Assembly: GCA_038087875.1 (NCBI GenBank)
Contig: CM075989.1
Span: 16,244,001-16,308,000, forward strand
From: Malacoraja senta
Lineage: Eukaryota
Length of the DNA stretch: 64,000 nt
Reading direction: 5' to 3'
A program made the translations under genes and the position numbers. Every line of letters starts with the position of its first letter. Position 1 is the stretch's first letter. This document shows, piece by piece, positions 11,510 through 44,950 of the stretch. The notes beneath the pieces were generated by a model, which searched no databases, was not told the DNA's origin, and was given only the letters and a program-made list of their open reading frames with translations.

Positions 11510-12462
11510 TAGACACAAAACGTTGGAGTAACTCAGCAGGTCAGACAGCATCTCTAGAGAAAAGGAATAGGTGACATTTCGGGTCAAGACTTCTTCAGAC
11601 TGACAGTCAGGGGAAAGGGAAATGAGATACATAGAAACATAGAAACATAGAAATTAGGTGCAGGAGTAGGCCATTCGGCCCTTCGAGCCTGCACCACCAT
11701 TCAATATGATCATGGCTGATCATCCAACTCAGTATCCCGTACCGCCTTCTCTCCATACCCTCTGATCCCTTTAGCCACAAGGGCCACATCTAACTCCCTC
11801 TTAAATATAGCCAATGAACTGGCCTCGACTACCCTCTGTGGCAGAGAGTTCCAGAGATTCACCACTCTCTGTGTGAAAAAAGTTCTTCTCATCTCGGTTT
11901 TAAAGAATTTCCCCCTTATCCTTAAGCTGTGACCCCTTGTCCTGGACTTCCCCAACATCGGGAGCAATCTTCCTGCATCTAGCCTGTCCAACCCCTTAAG
12001 AATTTTGTAAGTTTCTATAAGATCCCCTCTCAATCTCCTAAATTCTAGAGAGTATAAACCAAGTCTATCCAGTCTTTCTTCATAAGACAGTCCTGACATC
12101 CCAGGAATCAGTCTGGTGAACCTTCTCTGCACTCCCTCTATGGCAGATGGTGATATAGAACAAATGAATGAAAGATATGCAATAAATGAATGAAAGATAT
12201 GCAATAAAGTAACAATGATAAAGGAAACAAGCCATTGTTGTGGACTAGGAGAAAACGAGTTAATGAAACTCACCAGGACGATAGTAAAACTAGTACAACG
12301 ACTAGGGTGGGGGAGGGATGGAGAGTGAAAGTAAGGGTTATTGAAGTTGGAGAGATCAATATTCATACCGCTGGGTTGCGAAGTCTGGCCCCAAACATCA
12401 CCCATTACGTCTCTCCAGAAATACCGCCTGCTCTGCTAAGTTACTCCAGCATTTTGTGTCGG
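11510..12462. mobile_element. Penelope-like element remnant with inverted termini, split by a young CR1
   Basis: gacacaaaacgttggagtaactcagcaggtcag...; opposite end ...agttactccagcattttgtgtc; internal ttgaagttggagagatcaatattcataccgct is the GIY-YIG C-terminus on -. Confidence 0.75.
11628..12144 (-). mobile_element. Young CR1 LINE 3' end
   Basis: AIEGVQRRFTRLIPGMSGLSYEERLDRLGLYSLEFRRLRGDLIETYKI...; (agaaacat)n octamer tail; nearly identical to 36017-36822. Confidence 0.93.
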
Positions 12463-23794: not shown

Positions 23795-24009
23795 CTGTTG
23801 AAGTTTAGAGAGTAACATCATGTATTAGATTCATGAACGAGCTGCCTTCGTTCAATAACATGGACGCAACACATGCTCGTTGAAAACCATCATCACAGGA
23901 GTATCCCGACTATGCTTAGTCCCCTGCTCTATTCTCTTTGTACCCATAACCATGTAGTCAGACACAGCTCCAACATCATCTTTAAATTTGCTGACAATAC
24001 CACCACTTG

Positions 24010-25118
24010 GTACCGCACCGGCCGGCACTACTAGTGAGCAAGCTGACGAAGATGCAGGTGGATGCTCCATTGGTTTCCTGGATCACCAACTACATGGCTG
24101 GACGAACACCGTATGTCAGGCTACAGAACTGCGTCTCAGACATGGTAGTGAGCAACACAGGGGCCCCACAGGGAACAGTCCTCTCTCCCTTCTTGTTCAC
24201 CATCTACATCTCGGACTTCAGATACAAGTCTGACTCCTGCCACCTGCAGAAGTTTTCGGATGACTCTGCAATTGTGGGCTGCATCAGCGAGGGGAGAGAA
24301 GCTGAATACAGAGGTGTAGTCAACGACTTAGATGTGGTGTGGGCTGAATGACCTGCAGCTCAACACTGATAAGACAAAGGAGTTAGTGGTGGACTTTAGG
24401 GGTAGAGGAACACTCCTGTCCCCTGTCTCCATCAATGGAGTGGATGTGCTGTTTACCAAGGAGTACAAATACCTTGGAGTTTATCTGGACAGTAAACTGG
24501 ACTGGTCCAGGAAAGCTGAGGCTCTCTACAAGAAGGGACAGAGCCGGCTGTACTTTTTGGGAGGGCTCCGCTTCTTCAACGTCTGCAGTAAGATGCTGCA
24601 GATGTTCTACCAATTGGTGGTGGCCAGTGCCATCTTCTTCGCTGTCGTGTGCTGGGGCAGCAGGCTGAAGGCCGCGGACACCAACAGGATTAGCAAGCTC
24701 ATCAAGAAGGCTGGCTCTGCCCTGGGGGCAGAGTTGGATTCGTGGGAGGTGATCTTGGAGGGGAGGATGCTCCACAAACTGTGGAGCATCTTGGGCATTA
24801 CAGCTCACCCCCTCCATGACACACTGGTCAACCCGAGGTGTACCTTCAGCTAGACTGGTTCCATCAAGATGCATTACAGAATGCCACAGGAGATCCTATT
24901 TCCCTGTGGCTATCAAACGGTACAACTCTTCCCCTTTCTGTCGTGGGTTAGACCGACTCCCATTCCTTCCCCCGTCCCCAATCTTTGCACATCCCCAATC
25001 CTTTCCACTCATTACTTTAATTTCATGTATCTTGTTTTTTTATAACTATTTTATAATAGTTTTTTTATAACTATTGGCATTATAACTTCCTGGGATAAAT
25101 AAAGCTATCGTATCGTAT
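24010..25118 (+). mobile_element. Rex1/Babar-like LINE 3' portion (RT)
   Basis: NTGAPQGTVLSPFLFTIY...LQKFSDDSAIVG, YKYLGV, GQSRLYFL; tail gggataaataaagctatcgtatcgtattg. Confidence 0.88.
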
Positions 25119-31024: not shown

Positions 31025-31820
31025 GGGGAGCTGCATTGAAGGTGCCTCTGCCTACAGCCTGTCCGTTTTTTCTTATCTTTTTTTATTTTAGTTTGTCTAA
31101 CAGTTTTGTTTTGGGGATTCTTTAGTTTTTCTATGTGGGGGAGGGGGGAGGGATAAGGGGGACGCTTCCTAGTCTATTTCTCCAAGTCGCGTCCTCGCCC
31201 CCCACCTCGCGGCCTACCACTGGATCGGAGCGGCCTTTCCTACCGGAGACCGGACCAGAGCTTCGGCAGCGGCTCTGAATTCACCGCGGAGCGGGGCGAT
31301 ACCTACCTGGATCGCCGTTTGAAGCTCCGGAGCGTTGGGCCCGCTGCTCCAACATCGCCGGGCTGGGGTTCGCGGAGCTCCCAGCGCGGGTGGCGCTGAC
31401 CAACATCGCGGAGTCCCTGGGGCCCTTTGCTGAGGACCGCCAGCGTGAATCTCCGCCCGGCGCGGCCTGGGGACGTCGGGAGCTGTGGAATCCGGTGGGA
31501 AGCGACCGTTTTGGAGGTCCAAGCCGCCGAGGTTGGCCTCCCGTTCCGACGTCGGATTTCCAACATCCCGGCGAGCGGGCCTGAGCGGCGGGCTGCCCAT
31601 AGCGGCGACTGCGGAGGGCTCCGGAGGCCCCGTCCACAGGTGAACATCAGAGGAAGATGACTGACGGGTGCCTTCCCTCAGTGGGAAACCTTTGATTCTG
31701 CTGTGTGGGGATGTTTTATGTTGAACTCTATCGTGTGTTGTGTTCTTTATTTTGTCTGGCTGTATGGTGATCACATTTCACTGTGCCAACTGGCACATGT
31801 GACAAATAAATGTATCTTGC
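31025..31820 (+). mobile_element. GC-rich non-coding retroelement with Rex/L2-type tail
   Basis: CpG-rich body; ends atttcactgtgccaactggcacatgtgacaaataaatgtatcttg; overlapping ORFs have no recognisable domain. Confidence 0.6.
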
Positions 31821-31846
31821 ATGAAGATCAGTACGCACATCACTTA

Positions 31847-32430
31847 AAGGCCTGTCTCACGAGTCTGCGGTCATTGGCGGCGAAATAGGAAGAATCTACC
31901 GCTCCTGGGCCGCCATAGACCGCGCACTCGGTCAAACGCCCACCGCCGGGGCCGTGCGGCGTTGTTCCCAACACCGCACGGTGCTAAAAAAACCCCAACA
32001 CTGTTCAAAAATATTTTCCTACCGCACAGCCGCCGCCAGTGATGCACGAGTGCAGCACGGTCGCCGACACAGCCGCCGCCAGTGTGGCACGAGCACCGTG
32101 AGTAGAACCTTCACCGCCACAGCCTCCGCCAGTGAGGCACGTGTGCGGCACGGCCGCCGGCACAGCCGCCGCCACAGCACCGCAATCAGCACTGCCGCCG
32201 CCACAGCCCCGCAGATCCGAAATGACGTCATCGCAGTCAGCCCGCCCTTTTTTTTTTTACTTACAGCAAGCTCGTGGGACCAGCCGTACTTAAATCACTC
32301 GGCCCCCGCGCAGCATCCGTGCGGCGCTCCCGTGGCATAGGCTCGGCGCTCTCGCCGTTGCCGTGCGGTCCCCTCTACCAGCGACGCCGCGCTTCACCGC
32401 CGATGACCGCAACACCGTGAGACAGAGCCT
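31847..32430. mobile_element. PIF/Harbinger-type MITE, GC-rich
   Basis: TTA|aaggcctgtctcacg ... cgtgagacagagcct|TTA; internal cacagccgccgcca repeats. Confidence 0.75.
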
Positions 32431-36016: not shown

Positions 36017-36822
36017 TATAGAAATATAGAAAATAGGTGCAGGAGTAGGCCATTCGGCCCATTCAATATGATCATGGCTGATCATCCAACTCAGTATCCT
36101 GTACCTGCCTTCTCTCCATACCCCGTGATCCCTTTAGCCACAAGGGCCACATCTAACTCCCTCTTAAATATAGCCAATGAACTGGCCTCAGCTACCTTAT
36201 GTGGTAGAGAGGTCCAGAGATTCACCACTCTGTGTGAAAAATGTTTTTCTCATCTCGGTCCTAAAGGATTTCCCCATTATCCTTAAACTGTGACCCCTTG
36301 TCCTGGACTTCCCCAACATCGGGAACAATCTTCCTGCATCTAGCCTGTCCAACCCCTGAAGAATTTTGTACGTTTCTATAAGATCCCCCCTCAATCTTCT
36401 AAATTCTAGCGAGTACAAGCCAAGTCTATCCAGTCTTTCTTCATATGAAAGTCCTGACATCCCAGGAATCAGTCTGGTGAACCTTCTCTGTACTCCCTCT
36501 ATGGCAAGAATGTCTTTCCTCAGATTTGGAGACCAAAACTGTACGCAATACTCCAGGTGTGGTCTCACCAAGACCCTGTACAACTGCAGTAGAACCTCCC
36601 TGCTCCTATACTCAAATCCTTTTGCTATGAATGCTAACATACCATTCGCTTTCTTCACTGCCTGCTGCACCTGCATGCCTACTTTCAATGACTGGTGTAC
36701 CATGACACCCAGGTCTCGTTACATCTCCCCTTTTCCTAATCGGCCACCATTTAGATAATAGTCTACTTTCCTGTTTTTGCCACCAAAGTGGATAACCTCA
36801 CATTTATCCACATTATACTCCA
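36017..36822 (-). mobile_element. Young CR1 LINE 3' end
   Basis: ORF 36197-36703 QVQQAVKKANGMLAFI...LVRPHLEYCVQFWSP... Confidence 0.93.
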
Positions 36823-37104
36823 CATATAGATCCCTTGTCACTATCAGTTTGACTGTCCGTTGTAATAGAACCAAACACAGGAGGTTCAGCATAATTACAA
36901 CAGAAAAATCCCGTTTATGTGTTGATAATCACAGGTTCATGGCTATCTTTCATAGTGTGTTTTGAGAAAGTTAATGTAAAAATGTTTTGATACGAAACAA
37001 ACTCGCCAAACATTTGGATTGTACAAATACTGTGAAAAGATGTAAAATAAGAAAGATAATATACATTAGGTCTACTATGTGCTTTGCCCGCCATAAATGG
37101 TTAC

Positions 37105-37196
37105 CTGATCACTTTTGGCTTTTGCAGTTTTTACGCTAACAACTGGTTCACCTTTAGCCATGTCAATAACCACCATCCGATGAGGACTCTTCACAT
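37105..37196 (-). CDS. SLTM: SLTM exon 13
   Basis: 92 nt, phase 1/0; VKSPHRMVVIDMAKGEPVVSVKTAKAKSDQ. Confidence 0.92.
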
Positions 37197-37534
37197 CTAA
37201 AATAAAAATCAAGTAAAGTTTATGAAATAGACGGCCATCAAACGCAATCACCATTGGATCCCATTGCTCCCCTGACACCTCCAGGCTGGGGCCAGTGACG
37301 TCACTGGGTCCCGTTGCCCTTCCCCTGCTACTGCCCCAGCCACATTCCCTGTGCCTCACTCGAACATCACCCTGCACTCCTCTGAGGCCTCTTCCTCCCA
37401 CCTTGGCACCCTCCCTCCTCAGATTTTGTGTCCGACATCATCTCCAACCCGTGCTGTCTCTTCACAATTCCACCCAACCTCCCCTTCTCTGATACGCAGT
37501 GGTCTAGCCTCAGCAGCCCCCTGCGCACACAACT

Positions 37535-37673
37535 TCTTCTTCTTGCGTATGGCGTTCACAGCCTATAGTTGTAGGACAACTTGTTCTATTTGATCTTATT
37601 TGATTGTGCACACCACGTTGATTGCATTCGTCGAAACAGGGCGGACCACGTGAAGGTTGCAATCTCCCACCCC
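37535..37673 (-). mobile_element. ~139-bp non-autonomous retroelement with ribozyme head and (AAG)n tail
   Basis: Flanked by 11-bp direct repeats cgcacacaact (37524-37534) and cgcacgcaact (37674-37684); minus strand ends ...ccatacgcaagaagaaga. Confidence 0.8.
37620..37673 (-). ncRNA. Minimal HDV-like (nested double pseudoknot) self-cleaving ribozyme motif, 54 nt
   Basis: GGGGUGG-GA-GAUUGCA-ACC-UUCACGU-GGU-CCGCCCU-G-UUUCGA-CGAA-UGCAAUC. P1 7 bp with G1-U wobble, P2 7 bp perfect, P3 3 bp, 7-nt L3 with U20/C22/C24/G25, P1.1 C-G, stub P4, J4/2 CGAA including the catalytic C. Confidence 0.88.
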
Positions 37674-38177
37674 CGCACGCAACTCAAGAATTTAAAATCC
37701 CACCATGATGTCAAATTCTTCTTCCATCACCTTAGCACCTAACCTATTACGTTGGCAAGGAATCCTTGAACCCCCCCTCCAACCCAATGTTTGACTCCAA
37801 CTTCCATCTCCAACATTCTGTCTCCTGGGTGCACTCTGCTAGTTTTCTATCCCATGTCATCTATTCTCTCCTTCACATGACTCAGCTGCCAATCAACTCC
37901 TTCTTACCTGGAGCCACCTTGCCCTAACTCTTGCCCCACCCCCTCAACTTTCTCAACATCATCCCTCCACTGATGTATCCGACCTCAAGATCCTACGGCA
38001 GTCCTTTTTTTTACTGTCATATTACTCAACAATTTAAAAAATATTTACTCTTTAAGATTTATGACAGGCAATAAGACAAAACAAGTGTTTCAACTCTGCA
38101 CATGACAAAAACTTTGCAACTTGTGACAATTTTTTTCCCAGTTTTAAGTATCTCGCACCATATTCAGTAATACATAC

Positions 38178-38353
38178 TCTTTCGCCTCTTCTCATCCATT
38201 TTTTTGGAATGTCCATGGTTAATGCTCTTTGAGCACTCCTTCTCATCCTTTTTACTTTCTGCTTTCTTTGTGGAGCCTGACCCATCCTTGTTCTCTTTTC
38301 TGTCCCCAGGTTTGTCAGTTTTCTTATCCTCTTTTTTGGAAGAAATTTGGCTC
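38178..38353 (-). CDS. SLTM: SLTM exon 12
   Basis: 176 nt, phase 2/1; SQISSKKEDKKTDKPGDRKENKDG...KKMDEKRRK. Confidence 0.9.
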
Positions 38354-39213
38354 CTTTGTAATTAGAACAAGAAAAGTTAGATACTGAATACTAATAGGAT
38401 CATTAAAATTACAATATTTTCTAAAATTGGCCTGAATTTTAATCATAAGTTACTATAAAAACAGTTCAGGATGTCGATGATAAGACAACGTAGTACAGAG
38501 TACAAAACGACAAAAAATTCCTATGGCATTGCTTGGGGTCAGTACCAGTGAAGTTGGAACAGACAGCGGAAAACAATTTGCAAAGCTATCACCTATGATT
38601 CAGAATCAAAACTATAATCTGACAGATGACATTCCCAAACTTAATTGTAATATACAGTGGAAATTGTTGTCTTAAAGCTATAAATAATAATTGTAACAGT
38701 TTTAAGAGAACATTTAGTCATGCTTTCCTCTAGAAAACAAACTATCACTGATATTTAATTTTGGATAGTGGGCTCTGTGGGCTGCACGTGTGTGAATTCT
38801 GTAAAATATGCATATCATTTGGTGCAAAAATTATCAATTCATCCTAATCCAAAACCTTAAAATGCAACAGGATTCTATAAATTCAACGCCATATAAATCT
38901 CAACCTATAAAACTATACCATCCTTGTCAAATCTCCTTTCAGCAGGTGTTGGAGATAACTAAACTCAAATTACAAACCCTAAGACAAAATTGCCCATGGC
39001 CAGATTATTAGTTCTTTGGACCCAGTTGAAGTTGAAAAGCTGAAGTACTTGCAAGAGGTATGCAGATTAAAAAAAATTATCGAAATAAGTACTAGACTAA
39101 TGATCTCTGGAGGCATCTATCATCACATAACTGGCCTCAAAGGAGTACGGTTAAAAAGGAAGAAAAAGCAGTCAGGATTGTTGTTTCTGATTTAACCCAC
39201 AATTCCAATTTAA

Positions 39214-43321: not shown

Positions 43322-44950
43322 TTCAGTTTAGTTCATTGTCACGTGTAGAGGTACAGTGAAAAACTTTGTTGCATGCTAACCAGTCAGCAGAAATACAATG
43401 CATGATTAAATAGGGCCATTTACAGTGTATAGATACATAAGGGAATAACGTTTAGTGCAAGGTAAACCCAGTAAAGTCCAATCAAAGATGGTCCAAGGAT
43501 CACCAATGAGGTAGATAGTAGTCAGGACTGCTTTCTAGTTGGGGTAGGATGATTCATTTCCCTGATAACAGCTGGGAAGAAACTGTCCCTGAATCTGGAG
43601 ATGTGCGTTTTCACACTTTTGCCTGATGGGAGAGGAGAGAAGAGGGAGTGGTCAGGGTGCGACTCGTCCTTGATTATGTTGCTGGCCTTGCCGAAGCAGC
43701 GCGAGGTATAAATGGAGTCAATGGAAGGGAGGTTGGTTTGTGTGATCGTCTGGGCTGCGTCCACAATTCGCTGCAATTTCTTGCGGCCTTGGATGGAGCT
43801 GTTCCCACACCAAGTTGTGATGCATCCTGATAAAATGCTTTCTGCAACGCATCGGTAGAAGTAGAGGCGTTGGTGTGCTTTCTTTGTCATTGTTTCAATA
43901 TGGGTGGTCCAGGTTGTTGGCGATATTGACTCCTAGGAATTAGAGTTTTTCCAACCTATTTTGTCTCTAATTCGGTGCCATCAATACAAACTGGGGTATG
44001 TGTACCACTTCATTTCCTGAAGTTGATCACTATCTCCTTTGCCTTGCTGACATTGAGAGAAAGATTGTTGTCTCGACGCCAGGTTCTCAATCTCCTTCCT
44101 GCATTCCGTCTCATCACTATTTAATATCTGGCCCACAATGGTGGTGTTGTCTGTAAATTTGAAAAACTGAATTAGATTTGTGCATGGCTGCACTGTCGTG
44201 GGTGTACATGGAGTAAAGGAGGCTGAGAATGCATCCTTGCAGAGCACCAATGTTGAGAATTATCGGACGATAATGATAGAGGATGATTTGTCCACTATCC
44301 TTAGTGATTGCGGTCTGTTGGTCAGGAAGTCGAGGATCCAGTTGCAGAGTGCTGACTCCAAGTCCCGAGAGTTTGGTGATAAACCTGGATGGTGTAACGG
44401 TGTTAAAGACCGCACTGTAGCCTATGAATAGGAGTCCGACGTAGGTGTCCCTCTTACCGGGTGTTCCAGGGATGAGTTGAGGGCTGGGGGGGTGGCATTG
44501 TCCGTGGACCTGTTTGGCGGTCGGCGAACTGCAGTGGGTCAAGGCTGCATGGATTTAATGCATTCCATAACTAGCCTCTCAAAACATTTCATGATGGTGG
44601 TTGTCAAGGCCACTGGACAGTAGTCATTTAGGCATGAGATCTTGCTTTTCTTCTTCTCACCGGGATGATGGTGGTCTTCTTGAAGCAGGTGGGCACCTCC
44701 GAACGGAGTACGGAAAGATGAAAGATGTCCACAGTACTCCCACTAGCTGGTCCATGGAGCAACTGAGGACACGGCCAGGAACTTCGCCTGAGCCAATTGC
44801 TTTTCGTGGGTTTACCTTCAGGAAGGCCAATTTAAACTCTGCAACAGTCACCCTGGGGAGAGGCACACTTGGGTATGAAGGGTCAGGTGTCACTGCTCAG
44901 TAAGCCTTATGCTTAAAGAGAGCATAGAAAGCATTCCGTTCATCAGGTAA
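43322..44950 (-). mobile_element. Rex/L2-type LINE, RT through tail
   Basis: VNPRKAIGSGEVPGRVL, GALQGCILS, FKFTDNTTIVG, KKAHQRLYF, RFRDSFFPAVIR; frameshifted. Confidence 0.88.

Follow-up and report, generated by a model that had tools for sequence, protein, structure and literature searches.

Retroposons that are processed by ribozymes are known from insects (R2) and from trypanosomes (L1Tc/NARTc), and have been predicted for RTE families. In R2 and its SIDEs, the 5' end is processed by the ribozyme from a co-transcript (PMC3414825). RTE, Ingi, Vingi and R2 LINEs yield bipartite non-autonomous derivatives with an exact 5' end, and Kojima put forward a 5' ribozyme as a possible cause of this exact 5'-end retention (PMC5786205). 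HDV-like ribozymes share a nested double-pseudoknot topology (PMC4908430), and those that lack P4 constitute an experimentally active class (10.1101/2023.06.13.544163). So far, these minimal ribozymes are known from metagenomes and phages alone, and whether they occur in eukaryotes has been described as undetermined. The CPEB3 ribozyme has a 4-nt J4/2 that contains the catalytic C, and a U20.G25 wobble, and an earlier note on the DNA studied here was correct in assigning to it a P1.1 of 1 bp, which consists of one G-C pair together with a U-U pair (PMC4836649). A 54-nt P4-less head on a 139-bp vertebrate retroposon, which is how we read the skate locus described below, would join the research on ribozyme-processed retroposons with that on minimal ribozymes.

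The locus lies in an intron of SLTM in the window, i.e. the whole 64-kb stretch of DNA that was analysed. That SLTM is the host gene and is transcribed from the minus strand, as the earlier note had proposed, was confirmed by tblastn with shark and skate SLTM proteins. When the exon at 47523-47035 was used as the query in an exhaustive protein search it retrieved sawshark SLTM, and that protein in turn retrieved SLTM of many cartilaginous fishes; by tblastn, the SLTM of the window is closest to those of Amblyraja and Leucoraja (~92% protein identity). The exons that border the host intron were both placed on the minus strand by tblastn, the upstream one at 38173-38355 (sawshark SLTM residues 488-548) and the downstream one at 37084-37194 (residues 548-585). 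The intron between them is ~980 nt long and the ribozyme fold is on its sense strand, with ~500 nt separating it from the 5' splice site and ~425 nt from the 3' one.

The minus strand at 37673-37620 agrees letter for letter with the parse given in the earlier note, and these 54 nt supply all the parts of an HDV-type double pseudoknot without P4. P1 is formed by GGGGUGG (nucleotides 1-7, 37673-37667) and CCGCCCU (nucleotides 30-36, 37644-37638), with G1.U36 at the predicted cleavage site, and is followed by J1/2, which reads GA (37666-37665). P2 is a perfect 7 bp between GAUUGCA (nucleotides 10-16, 37664-37658) and UGCAAUC (nucleotides 48-54, 37626-37620), and P3 has 3 bp (ACC/GGU, 37657-37655 with 37647-37645). 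L3 reads UUCACGU (37654-37648) and supplies U20, C22, A23 and G25, and the G for P1.1 is G37 at 37637, with C22 at 37652 as its possible partner. A 6-nt linker, UUUCGA (37636-37631), lies between this G and J4/2, which is CGAA (37630-37627) with the putative catalytic C at 37630. The core residues, namely the G1.U wobble, the C of J4/2, U20 and G25 of L3 and C22 for P1.1, are all present, and the topology is that of HDV and CPEB3 as had been claimed: a nested double pseudoknot whose elements follow one another in the canonical order, with cleavage expected at nucleotide 1, where P1 begins. The further claim that every HDV element is present stands for P1, P2, P3, L3, P1.1 and J4/2 but not for P4, because the segment U(UUCG)A, which had been read as a reduced P4, can form at most one pair and no helix; the motif is better termed P4-less. 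The calculated helix energies are -11.3 kcal/mol for P1, -7.4 kcal/mol for P2 and -0.9 kcal/mol for P3, which is weak. The unconstrained minimum free energy (MFE) structure of the 54-mer consists of exactly P1 and P3. By this method, which cannot model a pseudoknot, the isolated RNA did not fold with a better MFE than shuffled sequences.

The identification of positions 37620-37673 (minus strand) as an HDV-like fold is based on the sequence itself, on a descriptor and on sub-threshold Rfam matches. The HDV descriptor, a relaxed one, fixed P1 at 7 bp with G1.U and P3 at 3 bp; L3 had to be 7-8 nt long with C as its third base, P1 had to be followed by a G, P2 needed at least 5 bp, J4/2 had to read C-N-R-A, and P4 could be anything of 4-120 nt. 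A descriptor search of this kind, which the earlier note had suggested as a check, recovered the motif at 37673-37620 as the sole match on both strands of the 64-kb window. In 20 Mb of composition-matched Markov sequence the same descriptor found 6 loci (~0.3/Mb), two of which had a P2 of at least 7 bp (~0.1/Mb), and when the compact linker, U20/G25 and a C-N-R-A J4/2 were also demanded, the expectation dropped to ~2e-4 matches/Mb or, as a rough estimate, ~one per genome. Since approximately one chance match is expected per genome, a rate that is negligible for a single window, the descriptor by itself is no proof. The Infernal-type search that had likewise been suggested was successful only in part: no Rfam family matched when the window was searched at gathering scores, nor when 500 nt were searched at E <= 10, but a search with a 71-nt stretch gave sub-threshold matches of the HDV type. 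Just 2 of 4227 Rfam families had E < 1 in that search, both of them HDV-type and both with G37673 as position +1, namely HDV-F-prausnitzii (RF02682; 14.8 bits against a gathering score of 44) and CPEB3_ribozyme (RF00622; 11.3 bits against 35). In the cmscan alignment, the L3, CCCUGU junction and CGAAU segments are identical letter for letter to the CPEB3 consensus. The exact pattern of the ribozyme core had no match in viral contigs. Five matches to the core pattern in metagenome contigs were discarded as chance matches, as they are without P1, P2 and P3 pairing and look like bacterial coding DNA.

The ribozyme fold does not stand alone: an insertion of 139 bp on the minus strand (37673-37535), with an 11-bp target-site duplication (TSD) on both sides, begins with these 54 nt. 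The upstream TSD copy, AGTTGCGTGCG (37674-37684, minus strand), matches the downstream copy, AGTTGTGTGCG (37524-37534, minus strand), at 10 of 11 positions, and the downstream copy is identical to the empty site in Rhinoraja. The ribozyme is followed by a body of ~75 nt (37545-37619, minus strand), for which a closed multi-stem fold is predicted (MFE -16.2 kcal/mol, z = -1.55, not significant) and which presumably derives from the 3' region of a LINE. At its 3' end, the insertion has an (AAG)n microsatellite tail (37535-37544, minus strand), which was delimited by sequence and orthologue comparison and has a reduced and variable length in Amblyraja and Leucoraja. The 5' end of the insertion falls on the predicted cleavage site, G37673, to within one G: the ambiguity of this boundary is 1 nt, as G37674 can be counted with the TSD, as its last base, or with the insert, as its first. 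At the 3' boundary, the AG at 37534-37533 may be part of the tail or of the TSD.

The SLTM intron of the window was compared by blastn with the SLTM loci of three skates, Amblyraja (locus L006), Leucoraja (L007) and Rhinoraja (L008). The intron aligns end to end with those of Amblyraja and Leucoraja, and both contain the insertion, at L006:40153-40292 (93.6% identity) and at L007:36922-37047 (84%), respectively. In Rhinoraja, the alignment spans positions 38358-37674 and 37534-37080 of the window and omits exactly 37673-37535, and the two flanking matches overlap by 11 bp in Rhinoraja (L008:37922-37932), which is a single copy of AGTTGTGTGCG. The SLTM intron is thus a textbook case of a filled versus an empty site, in which the rajids have two target copies and 139 bp between them and Rhinoraja has one target copy. 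Over the intron, the window is 95.5% identical to Amblyraja and 94.6% identical to Leucoraja, and these two share 98.2% identity with each other. Because the insertion is common to the window species, Amblyraja and Leucoraja and its site is empty in Rhinoraja, it arose in the common ancestor of these three, after the Rhinoraja split and before they diverged from one another. The region into which it inserted has a history of its own: a G-rich block of ~780 bp (window 38020-37242, minus strand), which includes the 150 bp of the ribozyme unit and its TSD, is found in all four skates and is missing from the SLTM intron of the sawfish Pristis, where the sequences that flank the block abut at L013:41939. 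No obvious TSD was found around the G-rich block. As the block is older, being present in all skates and absent in the sawfish, the ribozyme unit landed inside an older insertion.

Overall, the TSD, the empty site and the tail show that the unit was retroposed by target-primed reverse transcription, and that its RNA template started at G1, to within one base. The unit has no coding capacity, its tail is of the LINE type (a microsatellite), and it has no terminal inverted repeats. ARAGORN found no tRNA-like head in the unit, and no small-RNA family (tRNA, 5S, 7SL or snRNA) matched in the window at Rfam gathering scores. The lack of terminal inverted repeats, of a tRNA-like head and of a small-RNA match fits a retroposon that is not a SINE. 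We also considered whether the unit could be a conventional Pol III SINE with a head that escaped recognition, in which case the pseudoknot would be incidental. Its size of ~140 bp and its LINE-type simple-repeat tail are indeed SINE-like, but the ARAGORN and Rfam results just given count against a Pol III head, and all matches obtained on the head at permissive thresholds were to ribozymes of the HDV type; we therefore hold a SINE to be extremely unlikely.

We also looked for relatives of the unit. No second copy was found in ~135 kb of unique skate sequence, in which the SLTM insertion is the one insertion seen, and searches by BLAST, descriptor and nhmmer gave no further copies in the window, in three unrelated Leucoraja loci (65 kb), in a locus of the stingray Hypanus or in the Pristis SLTM locus. 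Across all 428 kb sampled, to which the ~135 kb of unique skate sequence belong, an nhmmer profile recovered only the three orthologous copies. No LINE similar to the body or tail of the unit was found in the window or in these 428 kb, and the open 47-codon frame of the unit had no relatives in an index of 5.8 billion proteins.

Several other features were also recorded. A CR1-like LINE 3' fragment (window 36018-36822, minus strand), which contains an ORF at 36197-36703, is absent at the orthologous site in Amblyraja, Leucoraja and Rhinoraja, indicating that its insertion is specific to the lineage of the window; copies related to it are present elsewhere in the loci that were fetched. Further LINE reverse-transcriptase fragments in SLTM introns, at 24007-24853 (plus strand), 43522-44542 (minus strand) and 11710-12405 (minus strand), contain Pfam RVT_1 and an ALKBH8_N-like C-terminal motif. 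A GC-rich stretch of SLTM intron at 31214-32340 of the window has overlapping ORFs of 114-186 codons on both strands, and the Rhinoraja SLTM gene contains a G/C-rich low-complexity repeat of ~3.4 kb (L008 32425-35819) in which several frames of either strand stay open for 500-626 codons. Two database proteins annotated as 'reverse transcriptase family protein' (P0186 and P0192), which come from ~1.6-kb contigs of Proteus mirabilis and Klebsiella pneumoniae, have 59% identity to a skate CR1-like reverse transcriptase and, judged by this resemblance, look like vertebrate DNA contamination in bacterial assemblies.

Having established that the template began at G1, we considered how this 5' end was made. 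An insertion that begins at the predicted cleavage site has the signature that was argued to reflect ribozyme processing in R2 and its SIDEs (PMC3414825), and, by analogy with those elements and from the fold itself, the most likely origin of the template's 5' end is that the HDV-type fold cut itself out of a longer transcript. A different account of the same insertion would be that the retroposed unit is real and its head is a non-cleaving look-alike, the 5' end having been set by the transcription start or by some other process. An inactive head of this kind would be compatible with the rough estimate of one descriptor-level chance match per genome, with Rfam scores that stay below threshold, and with the absence of P4 and the weakness of P3. 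It would, however, leave to coincidence (~1 in 70, beyond the rarity of the motif) that the start of the fold and the boundary of the insertion lie no more than one base apart, and the letters of L3, P1.1 and J4/2 agree with the CPEB3 consensus. Moreover, a missing P4 does not speak against activity, since HDV-like ribozymes without P4 are known to be active. On this evidence we judge an inactive head to be unlikely, and we consider it probable that the unit is a promoter-less non-autonomous non-LTR retroposon, i.e. a bipartite non-autonomous LINE or SIDE-like element, with a ribozyme at its 5' head.

For such a ribozyme-headed retroposon, we infer both mobilisation by a partner LINE and read-through transcription, and the steps can be proposed as follows. 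A source copy, which has no promoter of its own, would be transcribed within a longer host or read-through transcript, and the ribozyme would then cut directly 5' of G1 to give an RNA that begins at the first base of the element. The reverse transcriptase of the partner LINE would recognise the 3' body and the (AAG)n tail, and the RNA would be copied into the nicked target by target-primed reverse transcription, which would generate the 11-bp duplication. The SLTM copy would represent one such insertion, made in sense orientation within an older insertion, and, being intact, it may also cut SLTM pre-mRNA.

This last point relates to the proposal in the earlier note that the motif is part of SLTM pre-mRNA. 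The motif does lie on the sense strand of an SLTM intron, but it is not a feature of SLTM's own: it is the head of a retroposon that is absent from Rhinoraja. With this orientation, the fold is part of SLTM pre-mRNA, and if active it would cut the intron, possibly co-transcriptionally and in competition with splicing, as that note had also proposed. HDV-type cleavage produces a downstream fragment that carries a 5'-OH, and splicing can tolerate an intronic ribozyme that is slow. Cleavage of SLTM pre-mRNA as a tolerated side effect is plausible.

An alternative to a tolerated side effect is that the intronic ribozyme has been exapted by the host, as a CPEB3-like element that is kept in rajids for its effect on SLTM expression, which it would tune by cutting the intron co-transcriptionally. 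The sense orientation in a short intron would be in line with such a role, as would the fact that the ribozyme is intact in three genera: in the three orthologous copies (window, Amblyraja and Leucoraja), 52 of 54 ribozyme positions are invariant, and the full descriptor is satisfied by all three. The sole two changes, G6-C31 to G.U and U5.G32 to U-A, both affect a CpG that lies in the 3' strand of P1. Both are one-sided and preserve pairing, so that all 18 pairs of the ribozyme form in 3/3 orthologues, and the number of compensatory double changes is zero among only three orthologues. However, two changes at a CpG are what neutral decay predicts, and the ribozyme has 2 variable columns in 54 in an intron in which 7.6% of columns vary. 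The binomial probability of two or fewer variable columns in 54 is 0.21, indicating no significant purifying selection on the ribozyme relative to the neutral intron background, and 30% of the 54-nt windows in the intron are at least as conserved as the ribozyme. As the ribozyme is no more conserved than the neutral intron, nothing suggests use by the host, and the empty site in Rhinoraja indicates that SLTM works without it. The insertion is fixed in three genera, absent in Rhinoraja and not conserved above the neutral rate, which makes a regulatory role unlikely, and retention of the ribozyme through tuning of SLTM expression is, in our view, improbable. The unit has drifted neutrally since its insertion, and dependence of the host on cleavage is not indicated.

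As a ribozyme-headed retroposon, the skate unit would be among the smallest known mobile units that rely on a ribozyme instead of a promoter. Intact sense-strand copies in introns, such as that in SLTM, would make it possible to test how splicing is affected by, or affects, co-transcriptional cleavage of an intron, and they bear on the origin of CPEB3-type ribozymes. L3, the layout of P1.1 and J4/2 are common to the mammalian and the skate ribozyme folds. Descent of the CPEB3 ribozyme from a related vertebrate retroposon can be proposed: sense intronic copies that are active in host pre-mRNAs would be the raw material for CPEB3-type ribozymes, and mammalian CPEB3 would stem from an ancient related insertion, a scenario that we offer as speculation and regard as quite unlikely. 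Full-text searches found no literature that links ribozymes to retroposons in skates or sharks, and neither searches on CPEB3 and retrotransposons nor a recent ribozyme-discovery preprint yielded an account of a eukaryotic retroposon with an HDV-like ribozyme that lacks P4. The principle is thus known, and it is the miniature vertebrate form with a CPEB3-like core that appears to be undescribed; what is new here is the orthologous empty site, the dating, the identity of the host gene, the setting inside an older insertion, and a test for selection by the host that came out negative.

Among the known systems, the Drosophila R2 SIDEs resemble the skate unit in being non-autonomous non-LTR elements with an HDV-like ribozyme at the 5' end and a 5' end that coincides with the cleavage site, and in both the ribozyme is joined to a LINE 3' end and processed from a co-transcript, which for the skate unit we infer (PMC3414825). 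The R2 SIDEs differ in that they are site-specific in 28S rDNA, have a full-size ribozyme with P4 and are rare (PMC3414825), whereas the skate unit is in the intron of a gene, has an ordinary 11-bp TSD and a P4-less 54-nt ribozyme, and measures 139 bp in all. In the RTE, Vingi and Ingi clades, bipartite non-autonomous LINEs such as RTESINE2, WALLSI3, the Vingi-1_EE derivatives, NARTc and RIME are likewise promoter-less and have a microsatellite tail. They combine the 5' and 3' ends of a LINE, as the skate unit presumably does, and they too occur in vertebrates (PMC5786205, PMC3185411); the skate unit is much shorter.

The mammalian CPEB3 ribozyme and the skate motif are both intronic and on the sense strand, and they have in common an identical L3 (UUCACGU), the G1.U wobble, a P1.1 of one C-G pair beside U/U and a 4-nt CGAA J4/2. 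The CPEB3 ribozyme differs in having a true P4 hairpin, in being located in another gene, in being conserved across mammals under selection and in having no recognisable retroposon, whereas in the skate motif a 6-nt linker replaces P4, the host is SLTM, and the score with the CPEB3 model (RF00622) is 11.3 bits against a gathering score of 35. Finally, the drz-Mtgn and theta ribozymes, to judge from the accounts in these sources, share with the skate motif a double-pseudoknot core without P4 and a length of ~50-60 nt (Riccitelli 2014 via 10.1101/2023.06.13.544163; PMC10879173). According to the same accounts, their sources are metagenomes and gut phages, and they occur in association with tRNAs, whereas the skate motif belongs to a vertebrate nuclear retroposon.
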